From contig CM119380.1 of NCBI GenBank assembly GCA_051294905.1, forward strand, positions 23,746,001 to 23,810,000: a stretch of DNA of 64,000 nucleotides. The letters are read 5' to 3'. This DNA comes from Botryllus schlosseri. Its lineage: Eukaryota. Under the pieces are notes generated by a model that saw only the letters and a list, made by a program, of their open reading frames with translations, did no database searches and was not told the origin of the DNA. The translations under genes and the position numbers were made by a program. This document shows positions 5,773-59,500 of the stretch, piece by piece; within the stretch, counting starts at the first letter, position 1; every line of letters starts with the position of its first letter.

Positions 5773-6748
5773 CACCTGATTCTGGTGATGGCTGGCGGTC
5801 ACGGGATAATTTCTCGTAAATGCAGTATGCCCGCAGTACTTTGAAGCGAACCTAGGGTCCGTTCATTGTGGTCGTATGAACCACCGAGGCCCGTTATGCC
5901 AGCACTTATATTTGCCAGCATTCATCTTAAAATTAACTTACCTGACGATAAAACACTCGCCTGGCGGAGAAACGCGTGCGATGCGTTTATCGGAAAGTAA
6001 TTTTTCGTAATGATAGATAAATAGACAATAATTAATCCATTCATCTCGCCATATAAATGGTAAAGCAATTATTCCATTGATTGGCTAATGACGTGGAATC
6101 GCCACATCTTCAAAGTCACTCTGGTCACCTTCGGACAGAAATTATGGCGGGTTTCTGTTAAGCACAAATTTGGATAAGTAAATGAGGCACCCTGCGATCG
6201 AATGCGATAGATATTTAGCATAGCATGGTACTGTGTCCGGTATACGATTGGAATAACAAGAAGCTCAAAATATTGATTCATATTTTTGCTTCAATGTTGT
6301 CATCATGTGTGACAATATTAACTTAGAGCACTTCTTTCGTTGTTCCGATATACCAGTCGTGGTCCATTACGGTACAAATATTGGAAAGAACTTCGTCAAC
6401 ATCAATCGTCTTATGATTAGCGCAAATTATGTAAACATTTGCAAAATATTTTCTAGCAAATAGCATCCGCAACCCGCATGTCCAGAAAAGGTTGATGTTT
6501 TCCAAATGCCAAAATACAATTCCTCTTGGGTGTTGGTATTGCTAAATTATCGTCTACGCTACGTGTTTAGAAAAAGGAAACAGTCGAGTTATATTCAGAT
6601 TATAGGGAATTTCTAGCCAAATTCATCCTAAAAATCTTCTGAATTCGCCAGTTAACATAAATTAGGTTGATGTCAGTAAATCAGGGCTCCGGTTCTTAAT
6701 TTCCAGTTATTGTTATGTCAAATTACGTTATGACTGATTTGTCTACTG

Positions 6749-7462
6749 CAGGGCCGGCCAACCCGTGGCCCGCGAGAAGGTTTTGAGTGGCCCGCGAGGT
6801 AATTTCCGAAATTTCTAATATCATCAAAAATGGATTGCACAGATTTTGAGCTTGCAAGACCAACCAAAAATTTGATTAGTCTGGCTGCAATACTTGAGAT
6901 GTGATGACTAAAATATCAGTTCCAACGCATTGACAGATCCATCAGCCATTCACATATTGGTACATCTTCGTACACTACAATAAAGCAGAATAATTTGCGA
7001 TAGATTTATCAAAGGTAAAAATTTTCTACAAGCTTAGCGCAATATGTTGTCACTCGATTTCTTGTTTTTAATATTGCTGCCCTTTTGTGCAAATGGAAGA
7101 ACACCTAATGTATCAGATTGAGTCTAACTATATTCGCGATTACGAGACACAGTGTCGTTCATCATATGCGACCTTGCGTTTGCGCTCGCAGTTAGACCGT
7201 CCACCGTTAAACCTATGCGCGAAATGATTGACGCATGTTGGTCACAGCTTTCGATATCGATATGTCCAATTGTCCATGCGCCGAATAGCCCAGTCCTCGC
7301 AAACTTAGCCCAGCGATATACAGCAGGCCCGCAATATAGTCAAGCGACAATATCATTGACCTATGAACTTCAAAAAAATTTCGCGCTTCGCGCGGATAGT
7401 GGCCCGCGCAGAGGTTTGTCAATCGAATGTGACCCTTTGGCCGAAAAGGTTGGCCAGCCCTG
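6749..7462. mobile_element. Charlie-like hAT MITE
   Basis: TIR CAGGGCCGGCCAACC / GGTTGGCCAGCCCTG; imperfect TSD. Confidence 0.75.
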
Positions 7463-25264: not shown

Positions 25265-25989
25265 TAGGGCTGGGCACAATGATTCGAGTACTCGAATCTG
25301 AATCGAGTATTAATTTTAATGATTCGAGTCGAGTAGTAAAATACGATTTTTCCGAGTACTGAAATTATACTCTCCTCGCCACTGAAAGCTAAGTTATCGA
25401 CGAGAATTATAGTTTCGATACTAATTTTCACTGCTGAAGCCTGGGAGCCTCTATTGGCCGTATCGTAGCATACGAAACATATAGTACAAAGCTACTAACG
25501 TGTCGTAAACTGACTATTGCGTTGAATAACTAACTGAAGCTTTATTAAAGCAAAGGTAACCAATGTGGCTTTAAGCAACATAGAACACAACTGACAGCAG
25601 AACAGAAGAGAATAGAAAGACACGAGAACGATAAGGCGACACTGTACTGTACAACGTAACTAATCAGGTGAAAGTAATTATTGCCTAATCGCGGATTACC
25701 ACATAACGTTACTAGAAATAACCCAGTTCCGAAGTCATGATCATCCCACAACTTTGTCACCAAGTGCAATGAAATCGGCATGGTCGAAAAAATACCAAAA
25801 TCTCTTTAATGTGATGGATAACAGGAATTATAGTCTTTGTGGTCGCATAAAAGGTACCGATTTGAAATTCGACATATTTCATTCTGTTGTGACGTCATAA
25901 TGGGTGATACTCGATTACTCGACTCGACTCGAAGCATTTCACGTGATTCAGAATCGAATCACTCAGGTACTCGATTTTGCCCAGCCCTA
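25265..25989. mobile_element. hAT-type MITE (TAGGGCTGGGCA TIR) hosting the solo LTR, itself inserted in a Charlie-like element starting at ~25235
   Basis: TIRs plus an 8-bp TSD GTCGCGAC (25257-25264, 25990-25997). Confidence 0.88.
25501..25703 (-). mobile_element. Solo LTR of the same Gypsy family
   Basis: 203 bp, visually identical to 30163-30365, flanked on both sides by the 5-bp TSD TAACG (25496-25500 and 25704-25708). Confidence 0.92.
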
Positions 25990-26357
25990 GTCGCGACTCC
26001 ATTTCCGATTTTAAAATGTTCCGTGGCGCAGCACAAAATTTGATAATCGGATTACTAAAAAATGGTCAGCACCTTTGCTCAGACATGCTCGCGGTCTATT
26101 TTGGAAGTTGATTACGTTCATCATCTTCGTGAACAGCAGAATAAAGGCAAAAGGCCCCCAAGCTTAGAATCACTATCTTTGGATGAATTAAACGGCCTCG
26201 GCTGACTCTAGGAATGCCCCGTTCTCCTATAATTGCGATAACAATTATACTTATTTCAGATAGTGAAGGCTATTTTTATCTATGTTTGATTGCAGTTTTT
26301 GCGAGGGCGGTCGTCCCCATATTAAAATAATCAATATGTGTGATACTAAATCGCGCG
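25704..26357 (+). repeat. ~650-bp segment duplicated downstream as 30366-30515 plus 37150-37660
   Basis: Near-identical; only about two substitutions noticed by eye. Confidence 0.92.
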
Positions 26358-29300
26358 ACACTGTACTGTACAACGTAACTAATCAGGTGAAAGTAATTAT
26401 TGCCTAATCGCGGATTACCACATTCTACCCCCCTTGCATTTTGTAAATTCACATATAAAAATGACAGAAGAATATCAATGACTAACAAAATTACCATACC
26501 GATCCGGCTGGCGCCTAACTCTAGTTGAACGCCGAAGCTCGACGTCTAGATTTCTACTCGAATCATCTGGTACATCCTCTGAATGGTTAGATTCTTGAGG
26601 CTCTTCATCAGATGACTTCAACTCAACGTTAGAAACTTCGCGACTTGGCTCGTGGCCATCGATATCAACAGAACAAGGTTCAGCTTGTTTCGTTTCAGGA
26701 TTAGTCGACGGTGTTTCTTCTCCAGTAGGAAAACGGGCCAAATCGTTGAGTGAGACGTTGGACTCGCGGCCGTTAGGAAAACGAACACGTGCGTAAGTCG
26801 GGTTGGCTTCAAGAAGTTCGACCTCAGAACATAGTTCGTCGCCCTTGTTTCTGACGAATTTGCGTAAGAAAACTGGCCCCGGTGTCAATAGCCAGGATGG
26901 CACGCTATTCCCCACCATACTTTTTCTTGGAAAGGAAAAGAATCGGTCATGCGGTGTTGAATTAGTTGACGTGCAAAGTAGCGATCGAACTGAATGTAAC
27001 GCATGAGGAAGGGCGTCAGCCCAACATGATTCTGAGACTCCGGTTGATTTCAAAATGAGTTTGATAGTTCGCCATAATGTTTGATTAAGGCGTTCGCACT
27101 GCGAATTTCCTGTTGGGTGGTAAGGCGTAGTGAAACTAGTTGCAACCCCGCGAGAATGTAAATAATCCTTGACTTCCTTGGACACGAAAGCGGTGCCTCG
27201 GTCACTGTGAACGTATCCCGGAAGTCCAAAAACAGCGAATAGTGTCGACAAACACGAAACGACGGTTAGCGCGGAAGTGTTGCGACATGGAAAGGCGAAC
27301 GGAAAACGACTATATTCGTCTATGACAACGAACATGAAAGGGGATTTGTTAGATTTCAAAGGCCCTTTGAAGTCTACGTTGATTCTTTCCCAAGGTTTCG
27401 TTGCTTTCACAAGCACTTGCGGATTGCATTTGTAAAAATTTGGTTTGATTTGAGCACAAATGCGGCAACGAGCGCAAGTCTCACGGACGTCATTTAGGGA
27501 GAACGAGAGATTTTTCGAACGAACAAAATGATGCAGCCTTGTGACTCCTGGATGACCCAGAGTGTCGTGTATGCGATTTAGATTAGAACCCAACTCACAG
27601 GGTGAAATCGATGCGCAATACGAAGATGTGGTCCGCGAAAACATATCAGCCGCAACATTCAGTGCCCCCGGTTTGTGTACGATATCATACGAAAATTGAC
27701 CAAGTTCGACACGCCACAGCTGGATTTTGGTATTTTTGATTTTACCTTTAGATTTGCCGTCAAACATGAACGCGACAGATCTCTGGTCAGTAACAAGAGC
27801 GAAATGCCTGCCATGTAAAAAATGAGCCCATTTACGAACTGCCGCGATAATTGAGGACGCTTCTTTCTCGACAGAGGAGTAGCGTATTTCACTTGGCGAT
27901 AGTGCTTTTGACATGAACGCGACCGGTCGACCGTTTTGACTAAGGATAGCTGCAATGGCTGCATTAGAAGCATCACACTCTATTGTGAACGGACTTGTCT
28001 CGTCGATCCTACCAAGAGACGCGTCAACTAACTCGCGTTTTAAATCGTTAAATGCGATAGATGCATTTTCGGAAAGCGGAAATTTTTCGACTGAATACAA
28101 AGGACGGATTTTGTCGGAGAAGTTGGGCAACCATTTGGCATAGTAGGCAAACATGCCACACACTCGTTTTAGTTCTGGGTTGTTGCGTGGCGGCAATAAA
28201 TCGATTAACGGCTTGAGTCTTTCTGGGTCCGGTTTGATCACGCCATGCGACACGCGATAACCGAGCAAGTCTATTTCCGTAGAACGGATGATCGACTTCG
28301 AATGATTGAAAGTGAGGCTGAATCGCTGAGCAGCATTGAGAAACGCGTCGAGATTCCGATCGTGGTCGTCCTTATCCATACCGCAAACAGTAATATTATC
28401 CAGATAAGCGAAGGTGCCGGTGAGCTTGTTGTCTTTTATGACGTTGTCTATTATTCTTTGAAATGCCGAAACTCCGTTGGTGACTCCAAATGGCAATCGA
28501 CGGTATTGGTAAAGATTTCCAGCGGCTTCGAATGCCGTATACGGACGATCATCAGGTGATAGTGTCACTTGATAATACGCGGACTTCAGATCTAACGTAC
28601 TGAAAACTTTGAAACGGGCGATGTTGTTGACTTGGTCATCGATCCTTGGTAAAGGATAGGCGTCTAGTAAGGTATACCTGTTGACCGTCTGAGAGAAGTC
28701 GATGACCATGCGCTTCTTGTGTCGACCGTCATTTACAACAAGAACCTGTGCTCGCCAAGGCGATGAGGACGGCTCGATGATTCCTTCCTTCTCGAGTTTC
28801 GCAACTTCCGCTTTAATGAAATGTAGATCGGCTTCGCTGTATCTTCTGGATTTAGTGGCAATCGGTTTACAATTCGGTGTCATAAACTTGAAAATTTGCG
28901 GTGCTTCGACACACGCTTGAGCAACTCCGCATACACTGTACTTCTGATCTCGAGGGAGTTCCAAGGTATCTCTATCTCCGTCCATATTGAAAATGACTCG
29001 TTTATGCAAGTTCATGAAATCGAGACCAAGTACCACATCAGCGCATAAATCTTCCATTCCTTTAAGAGGGAATTCCGTATATTTCGTTTCGTTTACAAGA
29101 ATGTCCGGTCTGTAGAGTTCTTCAATCTTGCGGGAATGGGATTTGGAAGCAAATGTAACCGTAGAGGAGTACGGAGTGGATTTCAGGTCAATTTCGTTGG
29201 CGTATCCAGTGCTTATGAAGCTTTCCGCGGAACCGGAGTCGATTAAAGCAAATGTTATGTGGCTGCCGATCTTAACCACGATTCTTGCTTTTATGAGACA

Positions 29301-30365
29301 TTTGGGTACTCCGATGGCGCTGAAGTATGAGATCATTGCAGTTACTGTTCTCCTGTTGTCGGTGGCCTTTCTCATGTAAACCACTTCACAATGACCTAGG
29401 ACTCCACAATAGCCACACTCGCTCCGTTTCGCTGGACATTTATATCGCGAGTAGAATGTCTGACCGCAAAAAAAGCACTTCCGATCAGGTTTGGTTGTTT
29501 TGCTCATTGCGTTGAGTCGACTGCGAGTTTCTGCGGATGATAGTTCGACTTCAGGATTCAAAGATTTTTCCAGCGGTTCGACGCCGACAGATGAACATGG
29601 AGTGCTGCAATAGATACTAGAGCTTCGCTGGGCGAATTCTAATGAGCGGGCTTTTGAGATCGCCACTTCGAGGGTTACAGCCCCGTCACTTTCTAATAAC
29701 CTCTGTCTGATAACGTTTGATCGGAGACCAGTAACGAAAGCGTCGCGGATGGACTCCTTGCGATGATCTTCCGCCGAGAGAGTCTTGAATGTGCAATCTT
29801 TCGCTAGATCTGCCAAGGCGCGGGAAAATTCCTCGATCGTCTCTTCGGGCTTCTGAATACGGGTTACTAGCATGTGGCGGACGAAGATTTCGTTCTTTTG
29901 CTTGATATAAATTTTGTCGAGAAGTTCTATTGCGGTATCGTAAGTCGAACTTTCTTCAAAATAGGAATAGACAGACGACGACACGAAATTCGTTAAGATC
30001 TTCAGCTTGTCGATCTGTGTATCTTGATCAAATAATGAAAGAAAATTATCGAAGGTCTTCTTCCAATGCTTATACTGTTTTTCAGCGGAGGCGGAGTCCG
30101 GACTGATATCGAGCTTGGCTGGTTTCAGAATCCTTTCTGCCATAATTCTATGTTGCTTAAATTGTCGTAAACTGACTATTGCGTTGAATAACTAACTGAA
30201 GCTTTATTAAAGCAAAGGTAACCAATGTGGCTTTAAGCAACATAGAACACAACTGACAGCAGAACAGAAGAGAATAGAAAGACACGAGAACGATAAGGCG
30301 ACACTGTACTGTACAACGTAACTAATCAGGTGAAAGTAATTATTGCCTAATCGCGGATTACCACA
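26355..30365 (-). mobile_element. Ty3/Gypsy LTR retrotransposon with a full 5' LTR (30163-30365) and a truncated 3' LTR (26355-26422)
   Basis: 203-bp LTR with TG...CA ends (TGTGGTAA...TTACGACA on the - strand) and AATAAA inside. PPT AAGGGGGGTAGAA at 26423-26435 abuts the 3' LTR. TSD TAACG at 30366-30370. Confidence 0.93.
26475..30143 (-). CDS. Ty3/Gypsy single gag-pol polyprotein, 1222 aa
   Basis: Domain order: Gag with tandem Cys/His knuckle-like motif (CFFCG..CPAKRSECGYCGVLGH), protease (LIDSGS), RT (LDLKSAYYQ, PFGVTN, AYLDNI), RNase H (ECDAS..EKE..TDQ), integrase (H-H-C-C, VDF, SDRG..35 aa..E). No frameshift or stop. Confidence 0.96.
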   Translation of the reverse strand: MAERILKPAKLDISPDSASAEKQYKHWKKTFDNFLSLFDQDTQIDKLKILTNFVSSSVYSYFEESSTYDTAIELLDKIYIKQKNEIFVRHMLVTRIQKPEETIEEFSRALADLAKDCTFKTLSAEDHRKESIRDAFVTGLRSNVIRQRLLESDGAVTLEVAISKARSLEFAQRSSSIYCSTPCSSVGVEPLEKSLNPEVELSSAETRSRLNAMSKTTKPDRKCFFCGQTFYSRYKCPAKRSECGYCGVLGHCEVVYMRKATDNRRTVTAMISYFSAIGVPKCLIKARIVVKIGSHITFALIDSGSAESFISTGYANEIDLKSTPYSSTVTFASKSHSRKIEELYRPDILVNETKYTEFPLKGMEDLCADVVLGLDFMNLHKRVIFNMDGDRDTLELPRDQKYSVCGVAQACVEAPQIFKFMTPNCKPIATKSRRYSEADLHFIKAEVAKLEKEGIIEPSSSPWRAQVLVVNDGRHKKRMVIDFSQTVNRYTLLDAYPLPRIDDQVNNIARFKVFSTLDLKSAYYQVTLSPDDRPYTAFEAAGNLYQYRRLPFGVTNGVSAFQRIIDNVIKDNKLTGTFAYLDNITVCGMDKDDHDRNLDAFLNAAQRFSLTFNHSKSIIRSTEIDLLGYRVSHGVIKPDPERLKPLIDLLPPRNNPELKRVCGMFAYYAKWLPNFSDKIRPLYSVEKFPLSENASIAFNDLKRELVDASLGRIDETSPFTIECDASNAAIAAILSQNGRPVAFMSKALSPSEIRYSSVEKEASSIIAAVRKWAHFLHGRHFALVTDQRSVAFMFDGKSKGKIKNTKIQLWRVELGQFSYDIVHKPGALNVAADMFSRTTSSYCASISPCELGSNLNRIHDTLGHPGVTRLHHFVRSKNLSFSLNDVRETCARCRICAQIKPNFYKCNPQVLVKATKPWERINVDFKGPLKSNKSPFMFVVIDEYSRFPFAFPCRNTSALTVVSCLSTLFAVFGLPGYVHSDRGTAFVSKEVKDYLHSRGVATSFTTPYHPTGNSQCERLNQTLWRTIKLILKSTGVSESCWADALPHALHSVRSLLCTSTNSTPHDRFFSFPRKSMVGNSVPSWLLTPGPVFLRKFVRNKGDELCSEVELLEANPTYARVRFPNGRESNVSLNDLARFPTGEETPSTNPETKQAEPCSVDIDGHEPSREVSNVELKSSDEEPQESNHSEDVPDDSSRNLDVELRRSTRVRRQPDRYGNFVSH

Positions 30366-30924
30366 TAACGTTACTAGAAATAACCCAGTTCCGAAGTCAT
30401 GATCATCCCACAACTTTGTCACCAAGTGCAATGAAATCGGCATGGTCGAAAAAATACCAAAATCTCTTTAATGTGATGGATAACAGGAATTATAGTCTTT
30501 GTGGTCGCATAAAAGTATAGATAACTAAGGTAAACCGTAGATGCGACACTCGCGAGCATTACGTAACGTCACGCTCCAATTATACTCTACGGCACTGTTG
30601 TTGTTTTGCTTGGCGCTTATGCAGCAGGAGGCAGATTTCAGCATTAGGATGGCAATATCACCTATGTGAATCCGGCGGAATATGCTTACGTCATAAATAC
30701 GAATTTGCTGATTCATTCTCTCGCCAATGTTTCGCTCGTCGATGCACGAAATATTCATCACGGAAATAAATAATTTCATGCGTTGGTGAGAACAAAAGCA
30801 CGTGTAGAGAGGCTGAGAGGTCATATATATATATGCAATAGAATGTTACATTACCTATGGTTGTTAAGCGACGGAGTTGAACGATGAAACCGTATTACTG
30901 ATGATACCTGATTAGGGTCAGACT

Positions 30925-31943
30925 TTAAACTAAAAATATCGTACTGTAAAATGCCTTTCGCTTAATTATATTTGTATATGTTGTAGATAACACCTTCTAC
31001 TGTCCACGAAATGTAATCATTCAATCAGTACCTCGAAGGGAAAGCCAGCGGAATACTTGTAAATTGCGAATAATTCACAATGCCGGCAACGCAACTAGAT
31101 GGTCGCAACCAAATGGTCGTGAAAACTGCTAACTTTGAACTCCAAATATCCTATTATAAAATGTCTTTCGCTCGATTATACTCATATATGTTGTTGATAA
31201 GACCTTCTACTGTCCAGGAAATGCATTCATTCAATCAGTACCTCGAAGGGAAAGCCAGCGGAATACTTGTAAATTGCGAATAATTCACAATGCCGGCAAC
31301 GCAGCCAGATGGTCGCAACCAAATGGTTGACAAAACCGCTAACTTTAAACTAAAAATATCCTGCTGTAAAATGTCTTTCGCTCGATTATACTCATATATG
31401 TTGTAGATAAGACCTTCTACTGTCCAGGAAATGTATTCATTCAATCAGTACCTCGAAGGCAAAGCCAGCGGAATACTTGTAAATTGCGAATAATTCGCAA
31501 TGCCGGCAACGCAACTAGATGGTCGCAACCAAATGGTCGTGAAAACTGCTAACTTTGAACTCCAAATATCCTATTATAAAATGTCTTTCGCTCAATTATA
31601 CTCATATATGTTGTTGATAAGACCTTCTACTGTCCAGGAAATGCATTCATTCAATCAGTACCTCGAAGGGAAAGCCAGCGGAATACTTGTAAATTGCGAA
31701 AAATTCACAATGCCGGCAACGCAGCCAGATGGTCGCAACCAAATGGTTGACAAAACCGCTAACTTTAAACTAAAAATATCCTGCTGTAAAATGTCTTTCG
31801 CTCGATTATACTCATATATGTTGTAGATAAGACCTTCTACTGTCCAGGAAATGTATTCATTCAATCAGTACCTCGAAGGCAAAGCCAGCGGAATACTTGT
31901 AAATTGCGAATAATTCGCAATGCCGGCAACGCAACTAGATGGT
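30925..31943 (+). repeat. 210-bp tandem repeat array with alternating A/B variants (420-bp higher-order period)
   Basis: The marker AATGCCGGCAACGCA recurs at about 31079, 31289, 31499, 31709 and 31919. Confidence 0.95.
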
Positions 31944-32368
31944 ACCAAAAGCACCAAAAATTACTTCGTAAATGGACATAAATCCTATAATTTATGAAAT
32001 TTAATTCAAATTTTCTTCGCGCGATATATAGTGACTAGATGTTTTGATAATAATATGGGTACCACTCTACCCGCAAGAACAGCTAATTTATAGAGATCAG
32101 CATTTCGGCGTCATTTTTCACAATCCGCGACTAGAACTACTCTATTGACCGCCAACTAACTAAATTTGCGAAAGTATCTTACTTACCCATAACTTTTTGA
32201 ATTTTTATCGGAATTTCTTGCGGTTGCAGGAGACTGAGACTCTATTCTCTATCTCTCCCCCACTCTCTCTCCCCTATCTCTCTCCTCTCCTCCCCTCCCC
32301 CTCCCCTCTCTCTTTCTCTCTCTCCTTTCTATATGCTCTCATTCCCTTCTTTCTCTCCCCCACTATTC

Positions 32369-32702: not shown

Positions 32703-32915
32703 TACCCGCGTATCTTAAGGACACGCCTTTTCCTGGGCTGTTACCACGACAAACATTTGAAGCGTGTTGCCTTACATTTGCCGATAAAGTCTGGAATCAA
32801 GCAGCAAATATCGAAAATATTAATACGGTAGCCCTGACTTGTGACACAAAAGATATTTTGTGGTCCGATATACTATCCATAAGACCACCGTCTGATTTTG
32901 CATCAGCCAGACCCA

Positions 32916-33755
32916 GTTAGCAGTTTTCACGACCATTTGGTTGCGACCATCTAGTTGCGTTGCCGGCATTGCGAATTATTCGCAATTTACAAGTATTCCG
33001 CTGGCTTTGCCTTCGAGGTACTGATTGAATGAATACATTTCCTGGACAGTAGAAGGTCTTATCTACAACATATATGAGTATAATCGAGCGAAAGACATTT
33101 TACAGCAGGATATTTTTAGTTTAAAGTTAGCGGTTTTGTCAACCATTTGGTTGCGACCATCTAGTTGCGTTGCCGGCATTGCGAATTATTCGCAATTTAC
33201 AAGTATTCCGCTGGCTTTGCCTTCGAGGTACTGATTGAATGAATACATTTCCTGGACAGTAGAAGGTCTTATCTACAACATATATGAGTATAATCGAGCG
33301 AAAGACATTTTACAGCAGGATATTTTTAGTTTAAAGTTAGCGGTTTTGTCAACCATTTGGTTGCGACTATCTGGCTGCGTTGCCGGCATTGTGAATTATT
33401 CGCAATTTACAAGTATTCCGCTGGCTTTCCCTTCGAGGTACTGATTGAATGAATGCATTTCCTGGACAGTAGAAGGTCTTATCAACAACATATATGAGTA
33501 TAATTGAGCGAAAGACATTTTATAATAGGATATTTGGAGTTCAAAGTTAGCAGTTTTCACGACCATTTGGTTGCGACCATCTAGTTGCGTTGCCGGCATT
33601 GTGAATTATTCGCAATTTACAAGTATTCCGCTGGCTTTCCCTTCGAGGTACTGATTGAATGATTACATTTCGTGGACAGTAGAAGGTGTTATCTACAACA
33701 TATACAAATATAATTAAGCGAAAGGCATTTTACAGTACGATATTTTTAGTTTAAA
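32916..33755 (-). repeat. Inverted copy of the 210-bp tandem array
   Basis: Reverse complement of the array at 30925-31943; identical 69-aa ORFs recur every 210 bp. Confidence 0.95.
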
Positions 33756-36700
33756 GTCTGACCCTAATCAGGTATCATCAGTAATACGGTTTCATCGTTC
33801 AACTCCGTCGCTTAACAACCATAGGTAATGTAACATTCTATTGCATATATATATATGACCTCTCAGCCTCTCTACACGTGCTTTTGTTCTCACCAACGCA
33901 TGAAATTATTTATTTCCGTGATGAATATTTCGTGCATCGACGAGCGAAACATTGGCGAGAGAATGAATCAGCAAATTCGTATTTATGACGTAAGCATATT
34001 CCGCCGGATTCACATAGGTGGCAATATCTATCCATAGGGTATGTTTAGCGAGTAGCTGCTCCGTATGGTTACTAACCAAGGTTGTTGGATCCATGCTACA
34101 CAATCTGTGCTGGGAAAACGAGCAAACGAATACAACTTTGAAGCCATTAAATACGGCTGCCCGAAGCGATTTCTTGTTTCTGTATAGATAGAAGTCCGAA
34201 GTCCGAGGTGTCGTATTGAAAGTAATTATACTACTAATGACGTGTTGGTATAATATCAATCAGAATAAGAAACCGCATTTCAGTTGACGCGGGCTCGGCC
34301 TCTTCAAATTCTGTAGATACCGTTATGCCGCTTAGCACGGAATCGCGCCTTGTAGTAATGGGAATTATTGTTACTTGACAGAGGATAAATTCTTTGAATC
34401 TACTTGTAACCGTTGTGACTTGGCCGATGAAGATGGATTTGATTGAAAGTCACTGCTCACTGACCATGTTATCTGCTGTATAATGTCCAATGACATAGAG
34501 GACAATGATGGCAAAGAAGCAAGTGGTTGCTGGATATGAAATTTATACAAGGGTCACTATCATACCACCTACCAGCTATCTTCATTCAAGAATTCAGTAA
34601 TGGAATCACGCTATCCGAATACGACAACCGAAAGATTGATGGATTTTGGTACAAATTTTAGTCAAAGCTGGTGATCCCACCAAGCATTTCATGCATGGGA
34701 CTATTTCTATGAAAATTTATCAAGGACCAAGTTTCTTCTCGACAAAATGAAACTAAATGACGATGCTGAGTCCAGTCGAAGAGGATGAAAGTAAAGGTTG
34801 TGAAATTTGTGTGACATAAGACCTACGTAACATCATTGATGATCCCTCTATTATTGCACACTGCACAGCTTTGCCAAAGAGACTCTGTGAATGCCTGCAT
34901 GATGGAGTGACTAGCGTAACTCCACAGTCAGATATCCAAATCACCGCTGGAATTTATCTCAGAAGCACAAAACTCCATAAAACCAGCGCAATGTCAATTT
35001 CATCGTTTAAGCTGTCAGTGAAATGATTTTTCACATTTGACATAATTTAACGGGATGATTTATTACCGTAAGGCGGCTTCTATTTGCCACATTTTTGACA
35101 CCCAGTATTTTCAAAACATGCAGTTCAACCAGCGGGATTCGCAGCCCATCTGCTTTCAGATGTAGGAGCACCTCTGCGTACCAGATTGTCACCTACCCTC
35201 ATTAAGCATTGAATTCTACAAGATAATAGTTACACACAAATATTTTCACTCTCATACTACAAGATCCTTGTCAACGGGCAAATCTATAGTTATCTGCATA
35301 TAATAGTAACCTGGCTCGAATTCTATTGTCCACTCAGGGTCTCTCATCTGTAATTCACTGTCACAACATATATCCGTGAACAGTCGTATGATGGATGTGG
35401 AAAATCTTCATCTTGTCGTCATATCATTACTGTTAACCTATTTAACCCTTACATTATTCTAATCATTTATGTTTACGACTATTTATACAATCAGATGAGA
35501 CAGTGTACAACATGTTTGATGTGGGTGTGATCCGACAAGTTGAATGCGAAGGCCTCATCACTCATTCCTATCCTAGTATTCCGCATGTGTAGGCTATATC
35601 TTCCATGTCATTATTGATGCTGCCTTATTTGTTATGTATTTCGGTTTGATGGAAATATAGACACTCCCTTACTCCTGTGACTTATGACCATTGATTCGGT
35701 TCTCTAATCCTTGTTAGGCCCTCCCAGGTGAGACAAATTTGGTAAAATCGCATTTTATTGCTTCTTTCTTCATGATGATATAGAAAATAAATCACGAAAT
35801 ATGGCACATAAAAACAGAAACACCTGGACTGTTGGTTATGTCACAGTCAGATATATTTTGGCAGATTCCAACAGGTGGATAGTAACGAAATACTTCTACT
35901 TTTTCAAAGTACTCAAGTAACCTACTTGTAAGACTTACTAGCATGGTTATGATATTTGACTATTTCTAAACTCAGCCTAGAATAACAACTTTTATTGCGT
36001 TTGAGATGAAATTAACATCATTTCTACTTCAGTATTGGGTTTGTTTGCCTCCAAAATATGAATATTTGGCCAAGCCTCCCTCTTCATAGATGAAATGAAG
36101 GAGCCACGTGGTTGGAAATTGCAATGCAGATTTTACAATTTCCAAACCGCGGTGTTCTCCTCCGAGAGGGCCACGTGTGTTGTTGAAAGTGCCCATGCAA
36201 TGTACTGTTGCTCACAACGCACCAAATTTTCCTCCTTAAAGTTTCTTCTTCCTTGACTGGACTCATTAGCTTCATTGTGCCGAGCAAAACGTTTGATAAA
36301 TTTGATCCTTGATAAACTTTCATAGAAATAGTCCCATGCGTGAAATGCTTCTGCGTTATCACCTGCTTCGACTGAAATTCACATCGACTTCCATCAATTT
36401 TCTGCTTGCCGCATTGGGACAGCCGTATTCCATTACAGACTTATTGAATGAAGATAGATGGTAGGCAGTAGTATTGTGGCTATTCTGAGCAATGCACTAG
36501 GTTCCAGAGTCTTATCACCAGTTGCCACTTGCTTCCTTGTCGTCACTCTCCTGTCCTCCATATCATTGTACATTATTCAGCAGATCTTGAATAAGATCCG
36601 CAGTGAATAGTCTCAATCAAATCTGCCTGTCTAGGCCAAGTCGCAACAGTTGCAATTAGATTCAAACAAATAATCGTCTGTCAAGTAATAAAAATTCCTA

Positions 36701-56500: not shown

Positions 56501-59500
56501 GTCTTTCGGTTAAAATGGGACTGGGCAAGAAAGAATACCTACAAAATTCAAATCCATGTTGGGTATTAAGGGAAACATCTCTTATAACGTCATAACAGTA
56601 TAATGACTTGAAAAGTTCAAATATATGTATATTTTTGAGACCGCGAGGAAAATAATGCCAGTTACACGGCATCCAAAATAATTTTGTGTTTCTGGACCAT
56701 GGCTATTTTGTAGCGCCCTGTGACCATTGTGATGATCGATCACCACTTGACAGGAATGTCGTTACATGAATGTAGGTAGCCTTAAGCCAGTGCTAAGATA
56801 TGTGCAATCGAGGTTTTGAATCTCCAACTATGGAAATAACATTGTGACTATATTTTCGTCATGGGAATACTACTATTGACGTGAAAGAGTACATTGTTTC
56901 CGTTACCCGACTTGTATTTGAGTACCTCAACCAGTTTCCAGCCCTAGTTTACAAGATGTGCAATTATGTAGTTATGGATGTTGTATGCTTAACCGTTTAT
57001 TTTCTTTCTGGAACATGATGACTTTATCGCATTTTATCATGATTTGACGTAACCACGCACAGGGGTACATTCCTAAATCCAATCCAATTTCTATGTCACA
57101 ATAGATCTTACCAAGGGAATGATGCGTGTAAAATATTATAAATTGGTACTATCAATTTGCCACCTGCCACGCTAAAAAAGGCTACTGATGAAGTACAAAG
57201 GTTCCATTTCAATATTTTCCGTTCACCGATCAAATTGGGGACCAATGCCGTCATGGTCAATCAATAGGTTTCTATTGTGACATCATATTTGACGAACGCC
57301 AGTCGGGGCGAATTTCTTTCAGGAAGCAAAGTCCACAACCAGCCCGGGTCCGCCTATCGTAATACCGCCGCCCGGCGATGTGATACCGCCGAAAAGGCCT
57401 GCCGCCGATCTGAAGGATATGTACGAGAAGTTTTTTCCGGAATCGTACGAGTTTCAGGTGAGCCACGATTGTTTTCAAATTCCACTTCTACCTAACAAAA
57501 CTACTTTTGAATAGCATATTCATATTGAAATGAACCCGATTATTACGATAGTCTTCAGGGCTAATCGCCAGCAACCAATATAGAATTGGAAAGAACATTG
57601 TATATCAACAATCGTATCGCCACATAAAATGTCACAGGCATGAATTTCTAATATTCGGGGCGAAGAGATCGCCTAAGCTCAATGTACCGATACGATTGTT
57701 GATATAAAATGTTCTTTCCAATTCCCTACTAGTTGTTGACAATTAGCTATCACTAGTGCCAGCTGAAAATATCCGTGTTCATCTCAATATGAATACCTGC
57801 TAATCAATTGAATATTGAAGCTCTGTACCTCCAAGAAGTTCTTCAAAACTGCTTTGTATATTGTGAAGTACAAAGGGGGTTTTGGGTATGTTTACGATAC
57901 CTTTATGAGTGAAATTGGGATACCAGCTAGGCAAAACAGCCCCTGTATCGCGATAACTGAATTTAATTAAGAAAATTGGACCTATTTGCAGTGTCATTGA
58001 TCTTCTTGAATTAGTCTTGGAAACCATTACTTATCCGTGACGTTTACTTATTCCACCGGAGTGCAAATGATAGCAAATATGATCAAACTGTTATTCTATT
58101 GTGGTGTCGTTGCATTTAGATAACTGAACATGGAGAACGTCATCCTCACTACCTCCTTGATAGTACCTCTTACTTGCACGGTGACATCTTGGGAAGATTT
58201 GTGAATTCCCGAGGTAGGCCGGCCGTCTGGTGTTTTGAAGTCGCTTGACTTTATCATGCTGTTTCTCTCAGAGACCAAGACAGAACCTGACATACCGGAA
58301 AGGCTTTCTAATGGCCGACACCCGGCCATTTCGCGCGCGAGATCGGACGGGAACGTGCTCTCGAATTGCATAAAATTTACCCATATCGATCATCCCTCTA
58401 CTGCACCAGCTCCTAGTATTACAAAAGGTACGCTACATATGATTTATTGACCGATGTTGCTGGAAACGCAGCTTTTCATTTGAATAATAGCCACGAGTTG
58501 TGCCACTGCCACGGCCACGGTGAGGTTCGTGACTGGTGAGGCACTGACCGCATTAGATTCAGATTTACAAATATGTAAACCCAAAATGGTAGCTAATTTT
58601 GTCGGTCACTTGTTTCTTATCATATTAGCACTCTTCACAAACAGTATACTATCAATTCTGAGCTGTTTATGATGATGATGCGTGATCACAGGGGATGCTT
58701 GATCCGTCTGTGCCTCACCTCTCTTTTCACGCTATAGTGTATAACTAATAATACGCAAATGCCCCGATTTGGGATGTTGAAATGTTTAAAATTTAGTCGT
58801 CCATGAATATCGATAGAAAATGCCCATGATTTATTTGTGTTGTGGTCATTGAAGGTTCATAATCTTCTGACGACAGGTGAGGCACTGCTTCACTTGCCTA
58901 CCCTGATTGCACGTCACTGCACTGTTATGTGTCTTGTGATTAACCGCAGTAAAAAAAATTGTAGTCAAATAGCTGAAAATCGTCGAAAAAAATATTCTTT
59001 CATTGAAAAAGCTGCAGGGCTGGACAAATCGAGTACCCGATTCATTTGATTCTGATTTAGGTATCAGGCTTTCAGTCTTGTATTCGAGTATCACCTGTTA
59101 TGACGTGATAACAATAGGTTCAATATGTATTTTTGTGGTCATAAAGAATATAATGCCTGTCATAGGCACACGAAACACTATCGCGTTTAGAAGAAACTGT
59201 CAAAATTGGAGTTTTCGTCAATAAAATACCATCGTCAATGGAAATGAAATATCTGTGAAGTCTTGATCAACCCACGGCATTGTCACAAGGTGCAGCGAAA
59301 TAGATTTTATAAAAAAATTCCAAACTATCTTTGGTGTGATGTAGAAGTGGCACTATCATTATTCTTTGAACATATTCGAACTTTCCACGTCATTCATACT
59401 GTGACAATCAACAGGAGTCGAAGCCTAACACGTGATTCAGTTCGAGTTCGAGATTATTATTATTTCCGAGTCTCAACGCGTAGTAGACTGTGATGTGCTC

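Follow-up and report, generated by a model that had tools for sequence, protein, structure and literature searches.

A Ty3/gypsy-type retrotransposon of Botryllus schlosseri with a primer-binding site complementary to its own LTR, a probable case of self-priming

The minus strand of the 64-kb stretch of Botryllus schlosseri DNA analysed here (the window) carries a young, compact Ty3/gypsy-type LTR retrotransposon of about 4.1 kb with a single ORF, and the sequence at its primer-binding site (PBS) is an exact complement of a segment within its own LTR. The pairing is retained, with differing sequences, in 13 related families from at least five animal phyla. Covariation among the families and the failure of the tRNA alternative support the original prediction that the element is primed by its own RNA in the manner of Tf1, which we consider probable, and self-priming is also the most likely reading of the LTR–PBS complementarity in the clade as a whole.

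Architecture and classification of the element

All features described below lie on the minus strand, which is the sense strand of the element. The 5' LTR spans 203 bp (30163–30365, TGTGG...ACGACA) and terminates with ...ACGACA at 30163; other genomic copies match only from the start of this LTR. The 203-bp extent is supported by at least 40 other copies, by 5-bp target duplications and by the polypurine tract (PPT) AGGGGGGTAGAA (26423–26434), which adjoins the LTR start in other copies too. In the copy under study the PPT is followed directly by a truncated LTR fragment (LTR nt 1–68, 26355–26422), then by 651 bp of foreign sequence (25704–26354) and finally by the complete 3' LTR (25501–25703), which is the same as the 5' LTR at 203 of 203 nt. 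The last 150 bp of the foreign piece (25704–25853) recur at 30366–30515, upstream of the 5' LTR, and because the piece thus sits upstream of both LTRs, the direct repeat in this copy reaches 150 bp past the LTR, to 30515. Typical copies of the family measure 4146 bp and do not contain the foreign 651-bp piece.

The gag ATG (30143–30141) follows the LTR after 19 nt, as originally described, and opens a single gag-pol ORF of 1222 aa (26475–30143) with CCHC gag, aspartic protease, RT, RNase H and integrase. The translated ORF has its domains in the order PR-RT-RH-IN, and among solved structures Ty3 is its best relative (E 4e-60). This order, the Ty3-like RT, the TG...CA LTRs, the PPT and the 5-bp target site duplication (TSD) place the element in Ty3/gypsy (Metaviridae). 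The polyprotein had been thought unlike that of a chromovirus, and as far as tested this holds: the last 212 aa, which follow the integrase core, gave no Pfam match of any kind up to an E of 10, and no chromodomain was found in the whole protein. A Ciona protein shares 53% identity with the element protein.

The single gag-pol ORF, the length of about 4–5 kb, the short LTRs (77–327 bp in the families compared here) and the broad spread among animals are shared with the Mag lineage or Cigr-1-type elements, a likeness that is circumstantial. The LTRs of Mag C average 174 bp (PMC3601003). Mag-lineage Gypsy elements as described from mosquitoes have PBSs for tRNA-Leu or tRNA-Ser (PMC3286476), whereas the clade described here has no tRNA-type PBS.

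Pairing of the PBS with the LTR in this family and its relatives

The 16-mer at the PBS position, TTTAAGCAACATAGAA (30161–30146), is separated from the LTR by a single A (30162) and is a perfect 16 of 16 complement of TTCTATGTTGCTTAAA (30247–30232) within the LTR, with one further possible G:U pair at 30145/30248; the coordinates of the original prediction were rechecked in this respect and are correct. The 16-mer and its complement occur three times in the window, at the PBS and in both LTRs (25570–25585 in the 3' LTR), against 0.12 expected. Among 5000 dinucleotide shuffles of the LTR, with the match anchored right after the LTR, none reached 16 nt (mean 3.2, maximum 12), and the complementarity is not due to chance. 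The coordinates also bear out the predicted orientation: the LTR segment points its 3' end at U5, and the duplex begins where the first copied base must define the LTR end. If the segment serves as primer, it would terminate 3' at A30232, just before GCC. The AATAAA poly(A) signal (30208–30203) lies 23 nt downstream of the putative primer segment, close to the 24 nt or so noted earlier, and is unpaired within the 70-nt loop of the predicted fold.

Fourteen families were compared: four from this genome (A–D), those of Clavelina, Actinostola, Armadillidium and Trichuris, and those of six further assemblies. In all 14 the LTR ends in ...CA and is followed by one A and then by 12–19 nt that perfectly complement a segment inside the LTR, except that in Trichuris, represented by one old copy, the match is 16 nt with one mismatch. 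Shuffling of each family separately gave no match equal to that observed in 5000 trials, in any family, and the minimum-energy fold of each leader contains the LTR–PBS stem. Loops range from 24 to 70 nt, and the shortest LTR is 77 bp. The distance from the PBS to the ATG is only 3–30 nt, so there is no space for a second PBS.

The relatives keep this layout with different sequences, and the search for compensatory changes between the PBS and the LTR was accordingly positive. All 11 families scored have Watson-Crick pairs at positions 1–13, with one mismatch overall; positions 3–12 show two to three pair types each and require at least 17 two-sided compensatory changes, and pairing beyond position 17 drops to the random level. 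The nearest relative, L077 (78% identity over RT-IN), has CGTCGTTCAGTTGGTTAAA paired with TTTAACCAACTGAACGACG where the family under study has TTCTATGTTGCTTAAA paired with TTTAAGCAACATAGAA. Directly after the putative cut site, RCC/GCT is conserved among the families.

Two observations are new. The palindromes described in the last section are one; the other is that the primer segment ends in a poly(A) hexamer (AATAAA, AGTAAA or ATTAAA) in 10 of the 14 families. In the remaining four (the family under study, L077, family C and L081) the hexamer is absent from the paired segment and 13–19 bp of pairing are retained. Placed on the tree, this distribution indicates that the hexamer was lost from the primer segment at least three independent times while the pairing was kept.

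Transcription start, proposed mechanism and competing readings

The original prediction took TCAGTT at 30256–30251 as initiator-like and put the transcript 5' end near it. As a start site this motif found no specific support: the LTR contains TCAGTT three times (also at 30199–30194 and 30175–30170), and it was rejected as a start marker. An initiator-like T-N-A-G-T is present at −13 to −9 from the putative cut, with A(−11)G(−10) in 11 of the 14 families, and four families have a TATA-like motif some 30 nt before the initiator-like A; both are indirect hints of a start at the segment. The family with the 77-bp LTR is one of these four, and only 31 nt precede its initiator-like A. The primer length predicted from this A is 11 nt, which is also the length of the Tf1 primer. 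The complementarity, at 13–19 nt, is longer, which means either that the start is located further upstream or that the initiator-like motif has another meaning.

Bulk RNA had no depth at the PBS or in gag. The LTR was covered by single-cell reads, but these differ from it at six fixed positions and continue into foreign sequence at both edges, 30163 and 30366, and for these reasons they are assigned mostly to a single other LTR copy, read through together with both its flanks; no accumulation of start points was reported among them. In one of four runs, four reads have a template-switch junction that falls downstream of the primer segment, at 30205. If this were the main start it would break the self-priming model, but four reads are weak and may represent broken RNA ends.

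Under self-priming, the genomic RNA would start within the LTR, at the segment 30247–30232 or a few bases upstream of it. We infer this placement of the segment at the 5' end of the RNA, as well as the cleavage and the priming itself; what the sequences show directly is that the site pairs, exactly where it does so, that the pairing is conserved and covaries, and that a tRNA-type site is absent. The 5' segment would fold back across the 70-nt loop and pair with the 16-nt site one base past the LTR. By analogy with Tf1, the element's own RNase H would then cut the RNA at the 3' edge of the duplex, between ...AAA and GCC. The new 3'-OH would be extended through the spacer A and U5/R to give strong-stop DNA, which would move to the 3' R, and replication would continue as in Tf1. 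Plus-strand strong-stop DNA would recopy the primer into the PBS in each cycle, and the two sequences would therefore stay perfectly complementary.

The PBS of the family under study begins with TTTAAG, and across the 14 families the PBS begins with TTT, TTA or TCA. None of the 14 has a start of the TGG type, which bears out the absence of a tRNA-type PBS noted originally. tRNA primers are the rule in most LTR elements, and on this general ground the primer could be a host tRNA, a half-tRNA or another host small RNA, with the match to the LTR being secondary. The tRNA-Leu or tRNA-Ser primers of mosquito Mag-lineage Gypsy elements (PMC3286476) and the half-tRNAs that prime some copia-type elements (PMC6317226) can be counted in favor of such a primer. 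Set against it are the lack of any TGG start and the A/T-rich PBSs themselves, no two of which are alike among the 14 families while each fits its own LTR. The tRNA question was addressed by a whole-genome search with the 16-mer. This search of the 495-Mb genome found the 16-mer nowhere else except in one mutated LTR; Rfam gave no match in the region, and there are no tRNA genes in the 64-kb window or in the loci examined. Because the 16-mer is otherwise absent from the genome and no PBS starts with TGG, tRNA priming of this element is very unlikely, and a host tRNA or small-RNA primer in general is close to refuted, keeping only the slimmest of chances.

Two further readings accept the pairing and interpret it differently, and we consider both improbable. 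The LTR–leader stem could be a regulatory or packaging structure, for example one that masks the 5' AAUAAA like the HIV-1 poly(A) hairpin, with something else as the real primer. This would fit the 10 of 14 families in which the hexamer ends the paired LTR segment, and the pairing partner is found only in the 5' leader, so that the signal would be masked at the 5' end only. However, the four families without the hexamer still pair over 13–19 bp, following at least three independent losses, and the AATAAA of the family under study is itself unpaired in the loop. A purely regulatory stem would also leave the element without any primer site and gives no account of a duplex that always starts one base after the LTR end. 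The stem may still mask the signal as a secondary advantage. Alternatively, the paired segment could belong to U3, with the start downstream (e.g. near 30205), in which case the RNA would carry it at its 3' end only; priming would come from that copy in cis, by pairing across the whole genome, or in trans from another RNA molecule or a small RNA derived from the LTR. The four template-switch reads set an RNA 5' end at 30205, and the hexamer would fall in U3 in most families, which is where RSV- or HTLV-type LTRs have it. Apart from the weakness of these reads, which come from a single run, the difficulty is that where the segment ends in the sole AATAAA, 23–43 nt before the LTR end, scarcely any R would be left for strand transfer. 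Nor could U3 be copied from a genome whose 3' portion is itself serving as the primer, and in the 77-bp LTR, where only some 30 nt precede the segment, a TATA-like motif sits at the distance expected.

Relation to known self-priming elements

Self-priming is established for Tf1, and Tj1, the sushi group, Tcn1 and TAR elements have been proposed to share it (PMC4600332; PMC6317226). Tf1 and Tf2 of S. pombe and Tj1 of S. japonicus resemble the clade described here in having no tRNA PBS, in that the PBS next to the 5' LTR complements an upstream LTR segment of their own mRNA, and in the orientation of the primer 3' end toward U5 (PMC4600332). The present clade differs from these three in its animal hosts, in the 12–19 bp duplex with a one-base spacer and a loop of only 24–70 nt, and in the poly(A) hexamer at the end of the primer segment in most families; in the present clade the start and the RNase H cut are predicted ones. 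Prediction from LTR–PBS complementarity alone is likewise the basis of self-priming in the sushi-ichi group of vertebrates, the Tcn1 clade of mosses and fungi, and the TAR, Houba and Osr-1 copia elements of plants (PMC6317226; PMC6934838). Tf1/sushi elements are chromoviruses (PMC6317226) and the sushi-ichi, Tcn1 and TAR groups are chromoviruses or of copia type, whereas the element under study has no chromodomain and represents a compact, non-chromoviral Gypsy clade of animals. Our literature search found no self-priming described for such a clade, and the lists of self-primers in the papers covered do not include it.

We lean, somewhat better than evenly, toward a broader proposal, in which a large and ancient non-chromoviral Gypsy lineage self-primes throughout, in cnidarians, nematodes, crustaceans, tunicates and the host. 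The primer would be the first 11–19 nt of the transcript and would ancestrally have ended in AAUAAA, so that one segment served as initiator, poly(A) signal and primer. Self-priming would then have an origin separate from that in Tf1/sushi, or would be ancestral in Ty3/gypsy, and the lineage as a whole would not depend on host tRNAs and would lie beyond silencing by tRNA fragments. If this is true, pipelines that rely on tRNA PBSs miss or mis-score these very common elements, and the clade evades defences directed against tRNA-type PBSs, such as 3'-tRNA fragments (PMC7472051). It would also provide a second, independent system for how RT/RNase H cuts an RNA duplex into a primer, and the overlap of primer and hexamer would show a limit of LTR compaction, one LTR being only 77 bp long.

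Tf1 requires a U5-IR stem beside the cut. A U5-IR-like stem at +1 is possible in most of the families compared here but weakly supported, with a summed P of 0.0115 and no single family convincing. A 15-nt match to 'CAA + LTR-complement' at 57597 in the window was set aside; it is part of a long inverted repeat of hairpin type that contains no ORF.

Two palindromes in the genome, L020 and the older L072, consist of LTR(1–134), a T and the reverse complement of LTR(203–1), with arms that end exactly at the LTR terminus and no TSD. The search for such palindromes is valid only with a longer junction pattern, as the short pattern, read on the opposite strand, is simply the ordinary LTR-A-PBS junction and is non-diagnostic. 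Both look like fossils of plus-strand strong-stop DNA in which the PBS at the 3' end folded back onto the LTR segment, and snap-back palindromes of this kind would be a visible genomic cost of self-priming.

The element and its LTR-complementary sequence

The element carries a single ORF of 1222 aa (26475-30143, minus strand) with a CCHC gag, aspartic protease, RT, RNase H, integrase zinc domain and integrase core, a domain order that is that of Ty3/gypsy, and the best solved relative is Ty3 itself (E 4e-60). The 212 aa beyond the integrase core gave no Pfam match even at E 10 and hence no chromodomain, which fits the original description of the polyprotein as unlike a chromovirus. The family has at least 40 LTR matches in the 495-Mb genome, where its internal part is present about 20 times. 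Other genomic copies show that the true LTR is 203 bp long (TGTGG...ACGACA, 30163-30365) and that the full element usually measures 4146 bp, with the polypurine tract AGGGGGGTAGAA and insertions flanked by 5-bp target duplications.

Read on the minus strand, the 5' LTR terminates with ...TTTACGACA at 30163 and is followed by a single A (30162), the 16-mer TTTAAGCAACATAGAA at the position of the PBS (30161-30146), TT, and the gag ATG, which begins at 30143. This 16-mer is the exact reverse complement of TTCTATGTTGCTTAAA within the LTR (30247-30232, minus strand, with GCC next), a segment whose second copy lies in the 3' LTR at 25570-25585; both the coordinates and the exact complementarity of the original prediction were confirmed by re-reading the positions. 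Three copies of the 16-mer occur in the window, where 0.12 would be expected. When the length of the LTR complement anchored at the second base after the LTR was determined for 5000 dinucleotide shuffles of the LTR, none gave 16 nt (mean 3.2, maximum 12).

Conservation of the pairing in fourteen families

We compared 14 families: that of the window, three sisters from the same genome (L050-L060, RT 57–61% identical to the window family), elements of four named animals (the tunicate Clavelina lepadiformis, the sea anemone Actinostola, the isopod Armadillidium vulgare, whose record bears an NCBI flag of possible contamination, and the nematode Trichuris suis) and six from other public assemblies. 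All 14 share a layout in which the LTR ends in CA and is followed by exactly one A and then by the complement of an LTR-internal segment. The complementary run is 12–19 nt long and perfect, except in an old Trichuris copy (16 nt with one mismatch), and in each family the observed length was reached by 0 of 5000 shuffles. All 14 PBSs differ and each matches its own LTR: ATTTAAGTTAGTAAAA pairs with TTTTACTAACTTAAAT in family B, TTTTCAGTTAATAAAA with TTTTATTAACTGAAAA in family D, TTACGTTAAATAAA with TTTATTTAACGTAA in Clavelina, and CGTCGTTCAGTTGGTTAAA with TTTAACCAACTGAACGACG in L077, the nearest relative (78% RT-IN identity). With the families anchored at the duplex edge, pair positions 1–13 are Watson-Crick in all 11 aligned families with one mismatch in all, positions 3–12 each show two or three pair types, requiring at least 17 two-sided changes, and pairing is random past position 17. 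In this alignment it is the base pairing that is conserved and not the sequence, and the search for compensatory changes among relatives, suggested with the original prediction, thus found them. The stem is present in the predicted minimum-energy fold of every family's leader.

A poly(A) hexamer (AATAAA, AGTAAA or ATTAAA) forms the 3' end of the LTR segment in 10 of the 14 families, whose PBSs accordingly begin TTTATT, TTTACT or TTTAAT. A tree built from the RT-RH-IN sequences of all 14 implies at least three losses of the hexamer from the segment, one shared by the window family and L077, one in family C and one in L081, the family with the 77-bp LTR described below; the window family has a separate AATAAA 23 nt downstream of the segment, unpaired in the loop of the predicted fold. 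The stem may also hide a cap-proximal poly(A) signal, but this cannot be its conserved role, since the pairing was kept at each loss. The base following the segment is R, then CC or CT (GTC in L077). Relative to the putative cut, an initiator-like T-N-A-G-T occupies positions -13 to -9, with A(-11)G(-10) in 11 of the 14 families, and four families have a TATA-like motif about 30 nt upstream of the initiator-like A; in one of these four the LTR measures 77 bp and only 31 nt precede that A. The initiator-like motif would make the primer 11 nt long, as in the S. pombe retrotransposon Tf1. Unlike Tf1, the clade has the hexamer-ended segment in 10 of the 14 families compared, a loop of only 24–70 nt and a complementarity longer than 11 nt; because of this last feature transcription may in fact begin a few bases upstream of the initiator-like A, and we infer its start to lie between 30250 and 30242. 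A U5-IR-like stem beside the putative cut is weakly suggested (summed P 0.0115).

The 77-bp LTR of L081 (L081:1865-1941) still contains the TATA-like motif, a 13-nt primer segment and its GCC, and the element has a 5-bp TSD (TGCTT) and a PPT. A clean 5-bp TSD (ATAAG) flanks the Actinostola element, which sits in a satellite whose units are roughly 50 bp long (L074:1282-2330 and 6267-6904). A further candidate of the architecture scan, at 57585-57730, proved false; there the arms of a long inverted repeat, GAATTGGAAAGAACATTTTATATCAACAATCGTATCG and its complement, measure about 37 nt each, and no ORF lies nearby.

Candidate primers for minus-strand synthesis

The duplex always starts one base after the LTR end, at the position where copying from the minus-strand primer has to begin if it is to define that end, and the LTR segment has its 3' end directed at U5. 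Tf1-type self-priming is the best reading of this arrangement and in our judgement a probable one; the original interpretation is supported by the conserved anchored pairing, the lack of a TGG-type PBS and the confinement of the 16-mer to LTR and PBS contexts in this genome. By analogy with Tf1 and Tj1, for which fold-back, cut and extension have been described (PMC4600332), the RNA 5' end would fold back onto the PBS and be cut at the duplex edge, and the end so made would be extended as primer. In every cycle plus-strand strong-stop synthesis would restore the PBS as a copy of the primer, which would explain perfect pairing in young copies and one-sided decay in old ones; in the old copies L011, L016 and L017 the pairing has decayed on one side only.

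A tRNA or half-tRNA primer is highly improbable, since no PBS starts with the TGG demanded by the CCA 3' end of mature tRNAs, the PBSs are family-specific, the only match of the 16-mer outside an LTR/PBS context in 495 Mb is a point-mutated LTR copy, and there is neither an Rfam match in the region nor a tRNA gene within the window. It is also unlikely that the stem is regulatory and the primer something other than the LTR segment; the 3–30 nt left between PBS and ATG give no room for another primer site. A segment located in U3 and acting in trans or through the 3' end of the RNA is about as doubtful. In favour of it are four reads from one run whose template-switch junction falls at 30205, on the downstream side of the segment; a main start at that position would contradict self-priming, but four reads cannot decide this and may be broken RNA ends. 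The RNA data comprised bulk RNA, with no depth over PBS or gag, and three single-cell runs, whose reads over the LTR came mainly from one other LTR copy. That copy has six fixed differences and is transcribed in the sense direction from upstream to downstream flank, past the LTR's AATAAA, and is probably a solo LTR in an expressed 3' UTR.

Self-priming has been listed for Tf1, Tf2, Tj1, the vertebrate sushi group, the Tcn1 clade and the plant TAR, Houba and Osr-1 copia elements (PMC6934838, PMC6317226, PMC4600332), and our literature search found nothing on it in a non-chromoviral animal Gypsy clade; the present case would be a variant of this known mechanism in a large animal clade. The size of the elements, their short LTRs and single ORF, and a Ciona protein with 53% identity give the clade a resemblance to the Mag or Cigr-1 groups. 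Among Mag-lineage elements, those described from mosquitoes are primed by tRNA-Leu or tRNA-Ser (PMC3286476).

Palindromic loci and the rearranged window copy

Two genomic palindromes consist of LTR(1-134), T and the reverse complement of LTR(203-1), with the junction exactly at the 16-mer and arms that stop precisely at the terminus of the LTR. One (L020:1383-1720, contig 11, about 5858552-5858889) has private variants common to both arms; the other (L072, contig 12, about 9510800-9511250) is older and decayed, with 82% identity and deletions, and neither has a target duplication. Their form suggests plus-strand strong-stop DNA (LTR-A-PBS) that snapped back on itself and was captured: the 3' PBS would anneal to the complementary segment of the same strand and U3 would be copied back. 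A chromosomal fold-back would have continued into the flank. On this reading the palindromes show that PBS and LTR segment anneal with each other in the course of reverse transcription; which primer starts the minus strand cannot be read from them.

The window copy has two identical 203-bp LTRs and an open ORF and is therefore young. Its 3' end is rearranged into PPT, LTR nt 1-68, 651 bp of foreign DNA and a full LTR (foreign DNA and LTR fragment, 25704-26422), which leaves the PBS unaffected; the copy has no TSD, and typical copies lack this arrangement. Of the foreign DNA, the final 150 bp recur with 100% identity upstream of the 5' LTR, at 30366-30515. This 150-bp piece is part of another repeat family (at 30388-30460 and 25726-25798), which in L072 abuts an LTR in opposite orientation, ending CTAGGGCTGGGCAAAATCGAG. 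The same intervals are the only part of the examined stretch with bulk RNA coverage, on both strands and with loose read ends on both sides. Just upstream of the element lie two arrays of a 210-bp tandem repeat (30922-32061 and 32915-33844 on the plus-strand map), each of 4–5 copies with 68–97% identity.
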